Origin: Zygophlyctis sp. KS116
Lineage: Eukaryota; Fungi; Chytridiomycota
Direction of reading: 5' to 3'
Assembly (NCBI GenBank): GCA_054661495.1
Contig: BAAFSQ010000416.1
Coordinates: 1-7,164 of the forward strand
DNA length: 7,164 nucleotides
Shown here: positions 1-7,164 of the stretch, piece after piece
How the letters are laid out: each line of letters begins with the position of its first letter
Numbering within the stretch: the first letter of the stretch is position 1
Notes under the pieces: generated by a model
What the model was told of the DNA's origin: nothing
What the model saw: the letters and a program-made list of their open reading frames with translations, nothing else
Database searches by the model: none
Made by a program: the position numbers and the translations under genes

Positions 1-620
1 TTATCTTTAAAATTAGACATCCAATTGTAATATCTTCTTCTTGAATTATCAAGAAGCCACTCAAATGATTTTTCCCTTTCAGAAAACAAAAAGTCACTTC
101 CGCTCGTATCCAGTAATGGTTTAGAAATATTTCCTACTTGTTTCTTGATTTTAGCGGCCAAATCATCCGACATCCATCTCTTTAATGGAGACGACACTAA
201 ATCAACTCCATGTCCACTACCAAGTATAAGATTTTTAGACTCTTTTAGACCTTTTAAACTGACAATGAGTGCGTCCGATAAACAAGTTCCAAGACTAGCC
301 AAATCTAAATTCTCCTTTAGCGGCTCTTCCCTGCCTTCGTCTGCCTCTCTCTTATCAAAAGCATCCTTGTTCTTAAAGACTGAGAGATTGACGGCATCAG
401 TCGAAGATAATTGATTCGGACATTTGGCTTTTACAGCATCACAAAAGTCTGCCAAATCAGCAAAAGGGGGCAATGCAACAGTTGGTTGATCAGTCTGGAT
501 CAGAAGCCTACCAGTACTATAACAATATAGCTGGAACCAAATGCGATGGTTTGCATCAGAATAGTGTCGCTGCTGATTACAGATTGACATTCTACAGAAC
601 TGAAATGTTTTTCGCAGCAT
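1..620 (-). CDS. Crinkler (CR)-like protein, tandem paralog B; only the N-terminal ~206 codons are in the window (3'-partial)
   Basis: 1-650 aligns to 2352-2998 (offset 2351, then 2348 after an in-frame 3-bp indel near 207-210). ATG is at 620-618 and the frame stays open to the window edge: MLRKTFQFCRMSICNQQRHYSDANHRIWFQLYCYSTGRLLIQTDQPTVALPPFADLADF...FEWLLDNSRRRYYNWMSNFKD. It is probably absent from the ORF track because no stop codon falls inside the window. Confidence 0.85.
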   Translation of the reverse strand, partial: MLRKTFQFCRMSICNQQRHYSDANHRIWFQLYCYSTGRLLIQTDQPTVALPPFADLADFCDAVKAKCPNQLSSTDAVNLSVFKNKDAFDKREADEGREEPLKENLDLASLGTCLSDALIVSLKGLKESKNLILGSGHGVDLVSSPLKRWMSDDLAAKIKKQVGNISKPLLDTSGSDFLFSEREKSFEWLLDNSRRRYYNWMSNFKD

Positions 621-650
621 CTCAGCCTTATCCTAGAAACAAGGCCGAAC
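1..650. repeat. Direct tandem duplication, copy B (partner 2352-2998); unit spacing about 2.35 kb
   Basis: Direct comparison: 262-475 is identical to 2610-2823, and 525-650 vs 2873-2998 has 4 mismatches. Similarity fades about 30-40 bp upstream of the ATG. Confidence 0.97.
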
Positions 651-775
651 TTCCCACTAACTGCGTGAAAAATGTGCATGCTGTCGGAGTATGCGGATCA
701 TCAGCGAATCGGCTCATTGAATTATATTATGATTGAATAATCCTTTAGAAAATAGACAATTTGACGAAAAGAAAT

Positions 776-2968
776 TTATTCATTTTTTAATCGTTGAAAG
801 TATGACTCTCCAAAGAATGCTAACAATTCTGAATTGGAGACAAGTACGGCCTTACTGGGAAGAGTTGACTTCTTGAAATTACCACCGCTGCGGCTAAACA
901 TTATGAAAACCATGTCTGGCAAATTCTTTGGGACAGCATCATTTATTTTCTGGTATTCCGTATTGAAGAATTTTAGATCAAACGGGGGGGTTTCATTCAT
1001 TTGTATCAGTTGCCGTCCGACAAACAAAATTCCTTTTAAAGATATATACTCTGACGTTTCGAGCCATGATAGAGTATCGACGCAATTCAAATAAAAGGTC
1101 CAAGAACTAGAAGGAAGTTTATCAGATATATTTCTGTTGTTTGAATGTTGGAAGTATTCAATTTCAATCTGTTTCAATGTCGGTATTTGTACTTTCATAT
1201 CTTCAGGGAGGTTATAAATGGCCCCCTTGAAAAATTCACGGATTGGAACTTGTTTATAATCGAGGAAGTTATACAGAGAAACACGAAATGCAATGTAGTT
1301 ACGATTAAAAACATCCCATTCCTGCCAGCCAATCTTCTCTCCGACCAATATATGATACCAGAACTTGTAATGACCATCAGTTATTCTTTGCAAATGACAC
1401 CACACAAACATAAATGGAATTTTCACCAAATACTTCCAGCTGATTCTTTTTAATTGGATCAGACCAGCCTCTTCAAGATCATAAAATGTAGTATCTCCGA
1501 ATACTTTCTGTTTTCCTTCAACAGAAAGAGATAGAAAGGAATACGCAATGGCATTTCCAAGCGCAGGATGGTTGACCTGATAAGCATCAGTGATCCTGGA
1601 ACGAACAGCCGATCCAACAGTAGCCCAGTAGTCTTCCGTATCTCCATTGTAATCTGGAGAAACTAAAACATCGTAAAGATACTCTAACAAGCGAGCATGG
1701 CCTCCAACATCTGAAACCATCTGTATAAATTTCGCATCGCCAGTTTCCAATTCTGGTATCTTTTGTTTCAGAATATTTTTACTGGCTTCCAAAGATAGTG
1801 GTATAAGTGGGAGCATACAAAAAGGTTGCTTAGAATTGCTGCAAAGCTTTTCCGTAGGTCCAATAGCGGTACCGGCAAGTACAGGAACAAATAACACCGA
1901 ACTAGTACATGAGAGTCTGCCAATAACTTTAAAGAGATCTTCAAATGCTTTAATATTATGTTCGTACACTTTGTTAGTTTCATCTATTCCTAGTACAAGG
2001 CACCGATACTCATCTCCACATACTTTACGAAAGGTGAAAGGCAAAATATTTTCTTTTTCGCTGAAAGCATCAAACTGAACCGCAACTGCGCGACCATTAT
2101 CGCGATCCGCTTGTTCAAGAATTCGAAGACTAATAGCTTTTTCAATTCCCATATAATCATCCTCATCAGTATATGGTGTTAGATTACCAAAGCTAATGTT
2201 GATAAACAACGCATCATTAAAGGCCGTTTTGAAATCGTCAAAGGAATCCGATTTCTGGACGTAATCCTTGAATGATACCGACAATTCTTGGAGAAATCGT
2301 GACTTTCCACTTCCCCGACCCCCATGAAGAACCGGAATAGCATGATCAGTTTTATCTTTAAAATTATACATCCAATTGTAATATCTCTTTCTTGTATTAA
2401 TTAGAAGCCACTCAAATGATTCTTCCCTGTCAGAAAACAAAAAGTCACTTCCGCTCGTATCCAGTAATGGTTTAGAAATATTTCCGCCTTGTTTCTTGAT
2501 TTTAGCGGCCAAATCATCCGACAGCCATTTCTTCAATGAAGACGACACTATATCAACCTGTCCACTACCAAGTATAAGATTTTTAGACTCTTTTTGACCT
2601 TTTAAACTAACAATGAGTGCGTCCGATAAACAAGTTCCAAGACTAGCCAAATCTAAATTCTCCTTTAGCGGCTCTTCCCTGCCTTCGTCTGCCTCTCTCT
2701 TATCAAAAGCATCCTTGTTCTTAAAGACTGAGAGATTGACGGCATCAGTCGAAGATAATTGATTCGGACATTTGGCTTTTACAGCATCACAAAAGTCTGC
2801 CAAATCAGCAAAAGGGGGCAATGAGATCTTTGAAGCTCTAGTCTGGTTGTAAGGCATTCCAGTATCATAGTCATATAGCTGGAACCAAATGCGATGGGTT
2901 GCATCAGAATATTGTCGCTGCTGATTACAGATTGACATTCTACAGAACTGAAACGTTTTTCGCAACAT
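776..2968 (-). CDS. Crinkler (CR)-like protein A, 730 aa: ubiquitin-like header + P-loop NTPase + probable (possibly inactive) REase-fold C-terminal domain
   Basis: The header IWFQL...ADLADFCDAVKAKCPNQLSSTDAVNLSVFKNKDAF...EPL matches the pattern I recognise from oomycete/chytrid CRN N-termini. Walker A GGRGSGKS is at 2323-2300, Walker B LVLGIDE at 1999-1979, followed by a GGHAR motif and a C-terminal WQEWDVF...IAFR...REFFKGA block typical of CR NTPase+REase proteins. The call rests on motif recognition, not a search. Confidence 0.8.
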   Translation of the reverse strand: MLRKTFQFCRMSICNQQRQYSDATHRIWFQLYDYDTGMPYNQTRASKISLPPFADLADFCDAVKAKCPNQLSSTDAVNLSVFKNKDAFDKREADEGREEPLKENLDLASLGTCLSDALIVSLKGQKESKNLILGSGQVDIVSSSLKKWLSDDLAAKIKKQGGNISKPLLDTSGSDFLFSDREESFEWLLINTRKRYYNWMYNFKDKTDHAIPVLHGGRGSGKSRFLQELSVSFKDYVQKSDSFDDFKTAFNDALFINISFGNLTPYTDEDDYMGIEKAISLRILEQADRDNGRAVAVQFDAFSEKENILPFTFRKVCGDEYRCLVLGIDETNKVYEHNIKAFEDLFKVIGRLSCTSSVLFVPVLAGTAIGPTEKLCSNSKQPFCMLPLIPLSLEASKNILKQKIPELETGDAKFIQMVSDVGGHARLLEYLYDVLVSPDYNGDTEDYWATVGSAVRSRITDAYQVNHPALGNAIAYSFLSLSVEGKQKVFGDTTFYDLEEAGLIQLKRISWKYLVKIPFMFVWCHLQRITDGHYKFWYHILVGEKIGWQEWDVFNRNYIAFRVSLYNFLDYKQVPIREFFKGAIYNLPEDMKVQIPTLKQIEIEYFQHSNNRNISDKLPSSSWTFYLNCVDTLSWLETSEYISLKGILFVGRQLIQMNETPPFDLKFFNTEYQKINDAVPKNLPDMVFIMFSRSGGNFKKSTLPSKAVLVSNSELLAFFGESYFQRLKNE

Positions 2969-2998
2969 CTCAGCCTTATCCTAGAAACAAGGCCGAAC
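2352..2998. repeat. Direct tandem duplication, copy A (partner 1-650)
   Basis: Same alignment as for 1-650. Confidence 0.97.
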
Positions 2999-3170
2999 GT
3001 CTAACTAAGGCCGTCGTGATTGGAATGAATGCACAAAATTTCATAATTTAGTATACATTGTGATAAGTATGCGATGCAATAGTCTCTATAGAAATCAAGT
3101 CTAAGAGCGGTTTAGAATCAATAGTCAAGGAATATTTCATTAGGGCAGAGTCAAGATTTAATCAAATTAA

Positions 3171-3980
3171 ATGTCATCTATTCTTCTTCCTCTAGCAACT
3201 ACAGCATATTCAAGCATTATTTCTCATATAAAATCTAAAAGAGTAGATAGTCTAGAGACTAATAAAGAGATAATTACAAATACAAATCAGGAATTTGGAT
3301 TTTTACAGAAACTTTCGCTTACGATTGCAACGTTGAAGGCGTATTCGAATCCTTGTCTTGTGGAGAAAGTAGATGCCAGGAATTTCAATTCTAGAGAAAA
3401 AATTTATCTCATTTGTCTAGTTATTGTCTTGCCAATTGATTTTATTAGAAAGTATGGATACAGAAAACTCTCTACAAAGGAAAAAAGAGGAATTATTTGC
3501 TATTGGAAGGATTTTGCTCTAAAGAATTTTGATGTAGAGATTGATGAGAATTTATCAAACTTGAAAAAGTATATTCAGGAATTTGAATCAGAGAATCAAG
3601 GATCTCATCCACACGCATGTCATTTAGTAAAACAGGCGGCTGAAATCTTTATAGATTCTCTACCAAGTGTTTTAAGAAATCATACTAGAGGTTTGGTTAG
3701 AAGAATGATTTTTTCTCTTTTAGAGGATGAAACTTGTCAAGTTTTGGGAATAATTCCCTCAAATTGGTTGTATAAAATACTTACAGATTGTATTTTACTT
3801 GGAACAGGAATGATTTCAGGATTTTTAGTTCCTCCTTCAAGATTAAAAGATTCAGAATCTACTCCAGTTCCTCTATTACTCTGTTCAAATCCTATAAATA
3901 CTCTTTTAAGTCAGAAAAAGCATGTTACGTTTCCAAGAATTAAAAGAATTCCAAGAAAAAGATCACTTCAGATTACCTAG
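3171..3980 (+). CDS. MpaB'/DUF2236 (rubber oxygenase Lcp-like) family-related protein, divergent and apparently internally shortened, 269 aa
   Basis: QEFGFLQKLSLTIATLKAYSNPCL resembles the family motif EFP...ALFRTYxIPSI. IYLICLVIVLPIDFIRKYGYRKLSTKEKRGIICYWKDFA...YIQEFE...IFSLLEDETCQVLGI resembles LYTLS.F..EP..WI.RYGWR.L...E..A...FW...YE...YSLLD.....A.G. Recognised from memory. Confidence 0.6.
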   Translation: MSSILLPLATTAYSSIISHIKSKRVDSLETNKEIITNTNQEFGFLQKLSLTIATLKAYSNPCLVEKVDARNFNSREKIYLICLVIVLPIDFIRKYGYRKLSTKEKRGIICYWKDFALKNFDVEIDENLSNLKKYIQEFESENQGSHPHACHLVKQAAEIFIDSLPSVLRNHTRGLVRRMIFSLLEDETCQVLGIIPSNWLYKILTDCILLGTGMISGFLVPPSRLKDSESTPVPLLLCSNPINTLLSQKKHVTFPRIKRIPRKRSLQIT

Positions 3981-3988
3981 TTTGCAGA

Positions 3989-4957
3989 TTAATAGTAAAT
4001 ACTTCTAGTTTTGTGGAAAGGAATATCTTTAAAAGCATGTCTGTCTCTTGTTATATAATCCCAAATGTAAAAGTCTATTAGAATCGCATTTATGTGGGTT
4101 TGAGATTTTTTTTCAATATATTCTTGTATCAAGTTTACAGCCCAGATTGAATTTCCTCTAATTTCCATTTCCAAGACTGAATTATGTTCAAGAATTGTAT
4201 TTTTTATAGTTTTAACAGCATTTTCCGAGTATTTTAGTAGATTTAGAGACACTAATGCTTGAGGGATTCTATAATCAGCAAAAATAGTAATAGAATCTAT
4301 ATCATCAAATCTTCCATATCCTTTCCCATCAAAAGCAGCCCATAAATCTGCAACCAATATTTGCGCTCTTTTTAGAAATTTGACTTGATTTCCTTTAAAA
4401 ATCCCTACATCATTCCAAAGATTATTAAAGTCACTAATTAAAATCTGAATCAACTTTTGACAAGAGAAATTAGCAAGTTTTAAAACATTAGTAACAGATC
4501 CCTCATATTTTTCCAATAGAATTTTTCCTGCTTCATTCATGACACTTGTTCTCTCTTTTAGCATGGGCATTTCTCTAGATCCATCCCCTTTGAAAATTAC
4601 ACGCATTTCTTCCAATGTTATACAAGAATATACTCTAGGATCAATGATACTGATAGACCTATTAATGAGAGCGCATAATGTCCAATATCCCTTGTATTCT
4701 TGAGAGTCATGAGTAACTTTAAAATCACTTGTATCCCAAAAAGAAAAGTTTAGTAAATCAACTAAAAATACCCAATTTACAGTCTCTTCATTCTTTGCCT
4801 TTGGATGTAGTTTATGGCTTGACCATGTATTAGTAGAATATTCCAATGAAATCATTTGTTCTAATATCCAATCTCCAGCAATAGGAATCTGTGTCTTATC
4901 AATTGAAACATCTAATGAGTTGTTGGAAATGAACTCTGCACTTTCAAGAACATTCAT
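3989..4957 (-). CDS. QNG1: Queuosine 5'-phosphate N-glycosylase/hydrolase (queuosine salvage protein, DUF2419/C9orf64 family), 322 aa
   Basis: Full-length, collinear family motifs: ESAEFI..NS.DV.ID, VNWVFLVDLLNFSFW, GYWTLCALINR, KRAQILVADLW, DIDSITIFADYRIPQ, EIRG, INAILIDFYIWDY and C-terminal IPFHKTRSIYY. Confidence 0.96.
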   Translation of the reverse strand: MNVLESAEFISNNSLDVSIDKTQIPIAGDWILEQMISLEYSTNTWSSHKLHPKAKNEETVNWVFLVDLLNFSFWDTSDFKVTHDSQEYKGYWTLCALINRSISIIDPRVYSCITLEEMRVIFKGDGSREMPMLKERTSVMNEAGKILLEKYEGSVTNVLKLANFSCQKLIQILISDFNNLWNDVGIFKGNQVKFLKRAQILVADLWAAFDGKGYGRFDDIDSITIFADYRIPQALVSLNLLKYSENAVKTIKNTILEHNSVLEMEIRGNSIWAVNLIQEYIEKKSQTHINAILIDFYIWDYITRDRHAFKDIPFHKTRSIYY

Positions 4958-5107
4958 GATACAATGTTAATTCCCCTGATCCGTGGCCCAGTTCCCAGTT
5001 CTCATTCTCCAGCCACACAGAGATGGTCTGATCATCAAATGAGTGCAATCAACTTTCTCTTTGGTTTTGAATCACTCAAACTGAAACATTTCATTATTTG
5101 TATCGTA

Positions 5108-5198
5108 CAGTATCCCCGAATGGAAAATGAAACACAATGCCGTTTCCAACACCGTTACCGTTTTGCCCCTGATGTTTGCCGTAATTGTTTCTAAAAAA
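5108..5198 (+). promoter_or_regulatory. Conserved ~90-bp upstream element of the secreted-family gene, copy 1 (putative promoter/5'UTR)
   Basis: TATCCCCG...ATGAAACACA.TGCCGTTTCCAACACCG...GCCCCTGATG.TTGCCG is shared with 6208-6298 and partly with 7091-7164. The regulatory role is inferred from position. Confidence 0.6.
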
Positions 5199-6044
5199 AT
5201 GAATCTCATTGCACTCTTGCTCTCTTTATCCTTGATTAATGCTTTGCCAACTGACTCAAATATTGAAAAAAGAGGATTAAATCTGAATATATTTTCAAAG
5301 TTGAAACCCGGTTTCAAACGTCCAGCACCAATTCATGAAGCAGAATCTCCAGCTATTCTGAGTCAAAAACAATTTAGCAGCGGTCAAGCAGGGTCCAGAG
5401 CACCCCCATCATCCCATGCAAACGATTTTAACAGGGAGCCATTTTCTCCCTCTACGCCTAATGATAGAGATACAATCTTATTACCAGATAATATAAGGCC
5501 GAGTACAAATAGAGATCTGTCTACAAGGCCTCGAGTTCAAACGAAAAAAGGCAATAAACCATCGTCATATAAGCCAAAACTCGGCACAATCCCAGAAGGA
5601 CCCTCTGCAGGTGCTGCGGATATGATTTCGGCATGGAAACAGTCTCAGAAAGAGTATTCAGATTACTTAAAGCAAGCTATCAGCTTGAGAGAAAAATCCA
5701 GGGGATCAAAATTAACCCCTGACTTTCTGAAGACTCACGATAAGACCTTACGTGAGCTAGCCAAAAAGCAGAAAACAGCCATGGATTCTCTTCATCCCAA
5801 AGCTCTGGCGGAGAAATATTTAGAGCAAGCAAAAAATATAGAGCTTAAAGCAGCGAATATTGAGAAGGAAGCCAACTTACGACTTCACCAAACGTTCCGT
5901 GAAACGACAGAACAGAAACCAATTTTTGCCGCTGTTAAAGCACGATATGAGCAAATACAGATTGCTGAAAGCCTTAAAAGCGAAGCAAAGGCCTTAGCTT
6001 TAAAGGCCACGATAGCAAAAGAGGCACTATTATACATGTCCTAA
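5199..6044 (+). CDS. Secreted hypothetical protein, 281 aa (family copy 1): signal peptide, short propeptide ending in a Kex2 KR site, Pro/Ser-rich disordered linker, Lys/Ala/Glu-rich helical or coiled-coil C-terminus
   Basis: N-terminus reads MNLIALLLSLSLINA-LPTDSNIEKR-GLNLNIFSK. I place the start at 5199 rather than the track's 5127 because it has an A-rich context (aaaaaaATG), gives a canonical signal peptide and matches the paralog's ATG at 6299, while the paralog's upstream ATG (6228) is out of frame. Confidence 0.8.
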   Translation: MNLIALLLSLSLINALPTDSNIEKRGLNLNIFSKLKPGFKRPAPIHEAESPAILSQKQFSSGQAGSRAPPSSHANDFNREPFSPSTPNDRDTILLPDNIRPSTNRDLSTRPRVQTKKGNKPSSYKPKLGTIPEGPSAGAADMISAWKQSQKEYSDYLKQAISLREKSRGSKLTPDFLKTHDKTLRELAKKQKTAMDSLHPKALAEKYLEQAKNIELKAANIEKEANLRLHQTFRETTEQKPIFAAVKARYEQIQIAESLKSEAKALALKATIAKEALLYMS

Positions 6045-6207
6045 GTTACATTAGGATTATATCCAGTTCATTTGCCATATGTAAATATCTTTTGTTGAAT
6101 GCTATTTACTCCACAATGTAATTGGAATAGATTTCTTGATTATAAACATACTATCTTTTAAAGTGACCTTCCATAAATTCTGGAAGATCATTCTTCTATG
6201 GTATTTT

Positions 6208-6298
6208 CAGTTATCCCCGCATTTGATATGAAACACACTGCCGTTTCCAACACCGCAACGGGTTTAGCCCCTGATGGTTGCCGCTATCTTAAACTTAA
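6208..6298 (+). promoter_or_regulatory. Conserved upstream element, copy 2
   Basis: Aligns with 5108-5198 and lies directly before ATG 6299. Confidence 0.6.
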
Positions 6299-6647
6299 AT
6301 GAATCTTATTGCTTTCCTTTTATCTTTATCCCTGATTTCTGCTTTGCAATCTGATTCCATGATTGATAAAAGAGGATTAAATCTAAATGTGTTTTCAAAG
6401 GTCAAGCGCCCTGCAACAAATCATAGAACTAATGCTCGAAATGTAAGGCAACCACACTATTCTACCAATGATGTGGCTAAAAAAAGCGTTCAAAATTGGG
6501 AAACTGCACAGAGAGTATTATGATGCACTTGAAGATCTTGCCCGTAAGAAGCAAATATACAACACTTATGGTACCCCTGTTGCATTAAAACAACTACAAG
6601 AGGCTGAGATAAGAGCAAGGGACCTTTACAGCATAATTATTACCTAA
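6299..6647 (+). pseudogene. Secreted-family copy 2, frameshifted near 6512 (or a short 74-aa gene, or a sequencing error)
   Basis: MNLIAFLLSLSLISALQSDSMIDKRGLNLNVFSK matches copy 1. The frame stops at 6521-6523, but adding 2 nt in the CAGAGAG run (6509-6515) gives WETAQREYYDALEDLARKKQ...IIIT* (TAA 6645-6647), which aligns with copy 1 WKQSQKEYSDYLKQ. Confidence 0.7.
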
Positions 6648-6648
6648 A

Positions 6649-6790
6649 ATAAATCTTTTGAATTTTTACTCTCTTTATCCTTGATTATTACTTGCAGACT
6701 GACTTGATGATTGAAAAAAGATGATAATCTCCAATAAGTAAAGCAGATGTGTCGCATTCTTAAAGAGCAAATACAGACTGCCAAAAACTC
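6649..6790 (+). pseudogene. Secreted-family copy 3, heavily eroded relic
   Basis: The start is mutated to ATA (6649). CTCTCTTTATCCTTGATTA and ATTGAAAAAAGA match the copy 1 signal/pro region, with small indels and GGA>TGA right after KR. 6765-6788 matches copy 1 5949-5972 at 20 of 24 nt. Confidence 0.75.
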
Positions 6791-7090
6791 ATTGTATCAT
6801 TAATCAAGTAATACGTTTGTACACGTTGCGTTTTCTTCTCACAAAAATTCCACATGATTCCCCTGCAAAGAGTTTTGTTGGCAAAGTCTCTATTCATGGG
6901 TGTGGACATGTGGATGACTTTATGGAAATCCTCTGAAATTATTTATCGCTATGAGTGATTCGAGTCCAGTACATTGTTTAAAGCTTTTCGCCTTTTCAAT
7001 CTATTAGGATGCACTGCTTACTGGTTTTTGGGACGCCGTTAAAAAGAAGTTGTTGTTTAGTAAAATATGATACTGATCGGGCTGTTCTCA

Positions 7091-7164
7091 ATTTGGATAT
7101 ATCATGTTTCAGACATGCGACATGTTCTTGCCCCTGATGGATGCCGCTACCTCCTACTAAAAAT
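7091..7164 (+). promoter_or_regulatory. Upstream element of a probable fourth family copy starting at the window edge
   Basis: GCCCCTGATGGATGCCGCTAC...ACTAAAAAT (7130-7164) matches GCCCCTGATGGTTGCCGCTAT...ACTTAAATG (6267-6301). Confidence 0.6.

Follow-up and report, generated by a model that had tools for sequence, protein, structure and literature searches.

The window analyzed here is a stretch of 7164 nt from Zygophlyctis sp. KS116 (contig BAAFSQ010000416.1, positions 1–7164). Its reverse strand carries an intronless gene for a Crinkler (CRN/CR) protein, which we call gene A, and the beginning of a paralog, which we call B. An allele of the locus from another isolate, found in a metagenome and denoted L100, was used for comparison. 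The features of both genes are the following, with residue numbers referring to gene A.

776–2968, reverse strand: gene A, an intronless open reading frame of 730 aa with leader, ubiquitin-like (Ubl) header, linker, NTPase and restriction-endonuclease (REase) fold
779–1369, reverse strand: REase-fold domain of gene A, assigned from predicted structure and alignment
1529–2476, reverse strand: STAND/AAA+-like P-loop NTPase of gene A, with Walker A (2300–2320) and Walker B (1979–2002) both intact
2483–2533, reverse strand: linker of gene A, residues 146–162, with an eroded basic cluster resembling a bipartite NLS
2600–2890, reverse strand: CRN ubiquitin-like header of gene A, residues 27–123, starting at I27
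2906–2917, reverse strand: R18-Q-Y20/S21, a site of the R-3 type; the predicted cleavage leaves Ser six residues before the header
2936–2938, reverse strand: M11 (context −0.9 bits), the ancestral start, which goes back to the Gln-rich leader group
2939–2968, reverse strand: codons 1–10, an extension private to gene A, paralog B and allele L100
2969–3001, reverse strand: upstream block of 33 nt, either UTR or core promoter, that is conserved among A, B and L100 and contains an in-frame stop at 2981–2983
1–620, reverse strand: paralog B with the same leader (558–620) followed by header and linker; the contig ends before its NTPase

Elsewhere in the window, a conserved gene of 269 aa without Pfam match (3171–3980, forward strand; pN/pS 0.14 against L100) stands tail to tail with a queuosine salvage gene (3989–4957, reverse strand). 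Beyond them we found a tandem family of secreted proteins (5111–6050, 6212–6650, 6658–6730 and 7130–7164), whose second copy occupies two reading frames, a further two being relics or cut off. They have upstream DNA, a signal peptide and a pro-region ending in K-R in common, and no Pfam match was obtained for them.

Gene A encodes an intact Crinkler/CR protein consisting of Ubl header, P-loop NTPase and REase fold, which is a common CR type (Zhang et al. 2016, as summarised in PMC5289972). The predicted model of the header has a beta-grasp-like order of elements. PF20147 matched 11 of 30 aligned family headers (best E 6e-5), the header of gene A alone staying below threshold, and gene A matched the family profile with an E value of 3.5e-34. 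Between gene A and L100 the header has a pN/pS of 0.04, which indicates strongly purifying selection. In the NTPase, the Walker residues G217, K222 and S223 as well as D329 are invariant across an alignment of 17 homologues, and a Foldseek search with this domain returned Apaf-1, CED-4 and archaeal ATPases (E 6e-7 to 1e-5). The best named match of gene A is a Rozella allomycis protein with 49% identity, followed by Crinkler proteins of chytrids, matches that suggest a Rozella-like organism. The R. allomycis match annotated as Mad1 (L098:1001–5210) appears to be a fused gene model of Mad1 and a CR NTPase module. Within the genome (12.7 Mb in 1175 contigs) we counted at least 56–58 copies of the CRN header and 8 near-full copies of the C-terminal domain of gene A.

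When the C-terminal domain was compared with known structures, the top match was AF1548 (Z 8.0, rmsd 3.1, 106 aligned residues), with Card1/Can2 and MspJI also among the best; nearly all of the best matches have an REase fold, at middling Z values. N628, D631 and Q653 of the nuclease motif are retained in gene A. Where 16 of 17 homologues have a conserved Lys, gene A has Ile (I655), four residues are deleted after C629, ahead of the Asp, and the complete D...(Q/E)xK motif is thus absent when gene A is aligned with these 17 homologues. Judged from the PD-(D/E)xK fold, this Lys would be catalytic, so that the domain has probably lost its nuclease activity. A second locus (P0001, L050:118–1377) has an NTPase nearly identical to that of gene A and diverges in sequence beyond it; it has the same four-residue deletion, yet retains the Lys.

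Because the predicted catalytic Lys is lost, a defence that works by cutting DNA is unlikely for gene A, and so is a nucleolytic form of the role against mitoviruses, mitochondrial plasmids or mtDNA that the earlier note had suggested. The fold itself, the retained Asp and Gln and the resemblance of the NTPase to the apoptotic STAND proteins Apaf-1 and CED-4 would fit an active nuclease in the organism's own mitochondria that defends against parasites of this organelle or takes part in cell death or in conflict over mtDNA. However, the replaced Lys and the deletion before the Asp count against it, the C-terminal module of paralog B lies beyond the contig end, and mitoviruses are RNA elements and hence an unlikely target for a DNA REase. 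We therefore consider an active mitochondrial nuclease highly improbable.

The leader of gene A comprises the 26 residues ahead of I27. Translation of the open reading frame bore out its earlier description: four K/R residues, D22 as the first acid, R18-Q-Y20/S21, and the header directly after it. A protein starting at S21 would have the same N-terminus that removal of Met yields in short-leader paralogs. Since an in-frame stop is located five codons upstream in both A and B, M1 is the first possible Met in either gene, and both leaders contain a second Met at residue 11 (M11), which the earlier note passes over. The claim that the leader is not a hydrophobic signal peptide also holds: our hydropathy scan detected no signal-peptide core in it, its best 8-residue stretch reaching 0.7 compared to 2.6 for BiP of the same genome and 3.1 for the secreted neighbour. 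Two statements on paralog B stand in part. Its only amino acid change in residues 1–21 is indeed Q19H, at the free x position, but with 3 base differences in 63 this is weak evidence. The NTPase and REase domains ascribed to both paralogs were found in gene A, whereas B breaks off at the contig end after 206 codons, before Walker A, and neither domain is seen in it. Within the header, a block at 476–524 in B differs strongly from its counterpart at 2824–2872 in A, while the flanks are 89–99% identical.

At the L100 locus, which is 95% identical to that of gene A (about 5% divergent), the leader is present as well. All three sequences retain M1 and the open frame, and the two sites that vary within codons 1–10 are silent (chance p ~0.10). 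L100 has a 2-nt deletion at codon 216 (L100:3001–3729), adjoining Walker A, and its frameshifted product ends at 242 aa. This may reflect a pseudogene or an assembly error and, given the frameshift, the gene may be dispensable.

Cleavable presequences are Arg-rich and acid-free in their N-terminal 20–60 residues (PMC7723863). The peptide that starts at M1 contains 3 Arg, 1 Lys and no acid in its first 21 residues, and the leader region has a pLDDT below 30 in the predicted model. Its hydrophobic moment is 0.60, where mitochondrial proteins of the same genome range from 0.28 to 0.89 and other proteins from 0.18 to 0.60, so that the two ranges overlap. Overall its features fall within the range of 8 unspliced mitochondrial proteins of this genome, spliced control genes being represented by their first exon only. 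An R-x-[FY]-S site occurs in 5 of these 8 proteins, and presequences of matrix proteins are short in this organism. The genome also contains genes for MPP alpha and beta, an Icp55-like gene and genes of the Tim17 family. By the standard of its own genome, a presequence-like composition of the M1 peptide is supported at the sequence level. When we joined random 10-codon extensions to M11, 9.5% were acid-free with at least 4 basic residues, and 1.1% additionally reached 3 Arg and the observed hydrophobic moment. Presequences are known to arise readily and de novo from ATGs in 5' UTRs (PMC4585086), which gives the recruitment of M1 a precedent; the ease with which such peptides arise also counts against the two-start reading favoured below.

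Whether translation begins at M1 or at M11 is decisive for the meaning of the leader. The closest relatives of the leader, in a paralog of the same genome (L033) and in a metagenome sequence (L099), start at the M11 position; both have a stop four codons upstream of this start and already contain R-Y-S-D. Further copies carry similar Gln-rich leaders beginning at the same offset, and DNA similarity to L033 in a genome search begins just before M11. Because these relatives start at M11, we take M11 as the inherited start, codons 1–10 as private to A, B and L100, and Y-S-D as older than M1. The R-3 cleavage pattern of MPP/Icp55-processed proteins, put forward for R-x-Y/S in the earlier note, is present together with MPP and Icp55-like genes; since Y-S-D came from a paralog whose start is M11, however, the match is not independent evidence of selection.

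For the start contexts we built a matrix from 36 hand-picked starts of the same genome, in which real starts are A-rich. M1 scored −3.3 bits, corresponding to the 17th percentile of these 36 starts, and the M1 of L100 scored −4.9 bits, below all of them; a model of the upstream 60 nt preferred M11 over M1 by about 3 bits. An in-frame upstream ATG was found in 1 of 36 ordinary genes, and we counted this rarity in favour of both starts being used. An initiator-like TCAGT lies 13 nt ahead of M11, a motif that is not enriched at real starts, and the position of promoter motifs failed to separate M1 from M11. RNA contigs from one estuary metatranscriptome cover gene A only at positions 1921–2195 and do not reach its 5' end, which we counted against the use of M1.

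The main rival reading, to which we give less than an even chance, is that M11 is the sole real start. M1 would then be an ATG that arose by accident in promoter or 5' UTR sequence, and gene A would encode a usual CRN of the cytosol or nucleus, not secreted and with its nuclease in decay. The relatives that start at M11 behind a stop, the onset of similarity to L033, the better context of M11 with its TCAGT, and the chance of 0.14 for one strict case in the family (see below) all argue in this direction. Against it stand the exclusively silent changes in codons 1–10, an excess of presequence-like extensions across the family, and the weak contexts of real mitochondrial genes (GUF1 −4.1, Icp55-like −3.5).

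We also considered a micro-intron that either joins an upstream exon, coding for a signal peptide or an acidic N-terminus, to the leader or removes codons 1–10. Introns in this genome measure about 24–33 nt, acceptor-like AGs flank M1, and gene A has an upstream ATG in phase. About 20 introns that we read by eye all begin with GTA and are very AT-rich, whereas the candidates near M1 have no GTA donor and an AT content of 0.44–0.67, and the inner donor is destroyed in B. The intron models around M1 were rejected for the missing GTA donor and low AT content, as was the upstream ATG that would give a signal-like peptide by splicing, for it is absent in L100. Such an intron has hardly any probability left.

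Four types of leader were observed in the Crinkler family of this genome: minimal, Gln-rich, Lys-rich and NLS-like (about 15 copies), and Arg-rich and acid-poor. These types are scattered over a tree of the headers, on which at least 4 changes are forced for the long leader and 5 for the Lys-rich one; this tree, built from 200 recombining bases, is resolved only in part. The scatter points to swapping of leaders. Presequence-like extensions were scored by a rule of our own, set after the data had been seen and with few controls, which 4 of 8 mitochondrial genes and 1 of 23 other genes pass. Extensions from an upstream Met passed it in 5 of 24 leader lineages, where 0.36 would be expected, and when two related passing lineages were merged, 4 remained (p ~0.001). 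The chance of at least one strict case, including an R-3 site, across the 24 lineages is 0.14. Hence the A/B leader alone is not beyond chance, while the family-wide excess of presequence-like leaders is. The survey of homologues for the same leader that had been suggested thus recovered presequence-like leaders in several lineages, but codons 1–10 themselves only in A, B and L100. Nor do A and B form the duplicated clade of mitochondrial CR proteins that had been envisaged: the pair represents one of several independent leader types and no distinct clade.

Another leader, acid-poor, 59–61 codons long and ending in R-Q-I-S, occurs in seven copies (L005, L016, L025, L044, L045, L015 and L006, on contigs C887, C69, C419, C1135, C462, C115 and C1 of the same genome). 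No stop was found in these copies at up to about 40% divergence, and their indels are multiples of 3. In 4 copies the leader holds the only Met, and DNA similarity begins just before its ATG. To judge from these patterns it is clearly coding. Close copies have a pN/pS near 1, so that the frame is visibly conserved and the residues are not. This leader is a stronger test case for targeting than that of A and B. A common origin of the two was tried and rejected, as their DNA similarity is no better than that of shuffles (p 0.17–0.75). The Lys-rich NLS-like leaders (L004, L009, L010, L012, L020, L026, L030, L041 and others) have the appearance of A-rich DNA from a start context that came to be translated from an ATG further upstream. 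In public assemblies we found about 120 homologues of the header, most of them with short or Lys-rich leaders. One, in another assembly (L106:63–422), combines a CRN header with a different C-terminal module and a 39-aa leader that ends in R-R-Y-Y-S directly ahead of the header. A metagenome scan with the N-terminal 139 aa gave no match. At four loci (L005, L008, L012 and L034) two headers stand in tandem with a micro-intron between them, and the second one is without a Met of its own. The CRN gene of L045 stands head to head with Miro and that of L049 lies downstream of Tom22; in a compact genome, adjacency to mitochondrial genes may be due to chance.

Taken together, we tentatively favour a gene with two starts, in which M1 yields a mitochondrial and M11 a cytosolic form, within a family that swaps its addresses (probability roughly 0.45). 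Crinkler A, and B with it, would have recruited an ATG 30 nt upstream of the inherited start, and the ten new codons together with the old Gln-rich spacer would make up a cleavable presequence of 20 residues. Weak first starts give mitochondrial and cytosolic dual targeting in other genes (10.1101/2025.03.27.645657), and because the context of M1 is weak we propose that initiation would be split between M1 and M11. The M1 form would enter the organism's own mitochondria, where MPP and Icp55 would trim it to S21, while the M11 form would stay in the cytosol. In gene A the second half of the NLS-like cluster in the linker has been eroded from KKRK to KKQG compared to its closest relatives, and we count in favour of the two forms that the cluster is worn down in both A and B. 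The mature protein would be a STAND-like NTPase switched by ATP, its nuclease domain probably inactive; we propose for this reason that it may serve as a binder or decoy for nucleic acid or for CR partners, sequestering its targets rather than cutting. The family would keep a swappable address before the header, which may be none, Gln-rich, Lys-rich and NLS-like, or Arg-rich and presequence-like. The broader proposition, that NLS-like, presequence-like and neutral leaders are gained from 5' UTR DNA, shuffled among headers and toxin modules, and send STAND-NTPase/REase proteins to organelles including mitochondria for selected work, seems to us less likely than not.

Rozella-like parasites grow within host cells, beside the host's mitochondria. 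A protein exported by an unconventional CRN route might therefore be sorted by its leader inside the host cell, to host mitochondria here and, for NLS-like leaders, to the host nucleus. Oomycete CRN headers mediate delivery into the host, and many CRNs are without signal peptide (PMC5289972, PMC6131194). However, the parasite has mitochondrial import machinery of its own, by which a presequence exposed at the N-terminus should be taken up first, and the leader comes without a signal peptide; we regard a host destination as improbable.

Compared to CR proteins as summarised in PMC5289972, gene A shares the header, the P-loop NTPase, the REase-fold C-terminus, the absence of a signal peptide and the membership in a large, fast-shuffling family, but differs in its presequence-like extension, the eroded NLS-like linker and the lost REase Lys. 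That summary reports nuclear localisation of CRNs and leaves mitochondria unmentioned. The CRNs of Rhizophagus irregularis (PMC6131194) are likewise fungal, mostly without signal peptide, in some cases provided with an added N-terminal address, and built from REase and NTPase modules. In their case, however, it is an ER signal peptide that has been added, and the member tested is nuclear; nuclear action is described there, and mitochondria are not mentioned. With the dual-start genes GARS1 and TRNT1/CCA1 (10.1101/2025.03.27.645657), gene A has in common a weak first ATG, a close in-frame second Met and a presequence, predicted in gene A, on the long form only. Both of them, however, have old housekeeping roles and isoforms that were tested, whereas in gene A a recent extension sits on a conflict protein and the two forms are predicted. 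EspF and Avr-Pita are also conflict proteins directed to mitochondria, as is predicted here, but the mitochondria in question are those of the host, reached after a defined secretion step, and their sequences show no relation to gene A. No mitochondrial CRN was found in the literature searched, a search whose coverage excluded most subscription journals. The architecture is thus known, and the presequence-like leader is real in the sequence and a candidate in use.

If M1 is unused, what is left is a CRN of the usual kind whose nuclease is decaying. If our preferred reading is true, a mitochondrial form would add a compartment to a CRN family otherwise described as acting in the nucleus, and would place a STAND-like conflict protein in the mitochondria of an intracellular parasite that diverged early. 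With leaders gained from UTR DNA and relatives that are without them, the family also forms a natural series in which the birth of targeting signals becomes testable.
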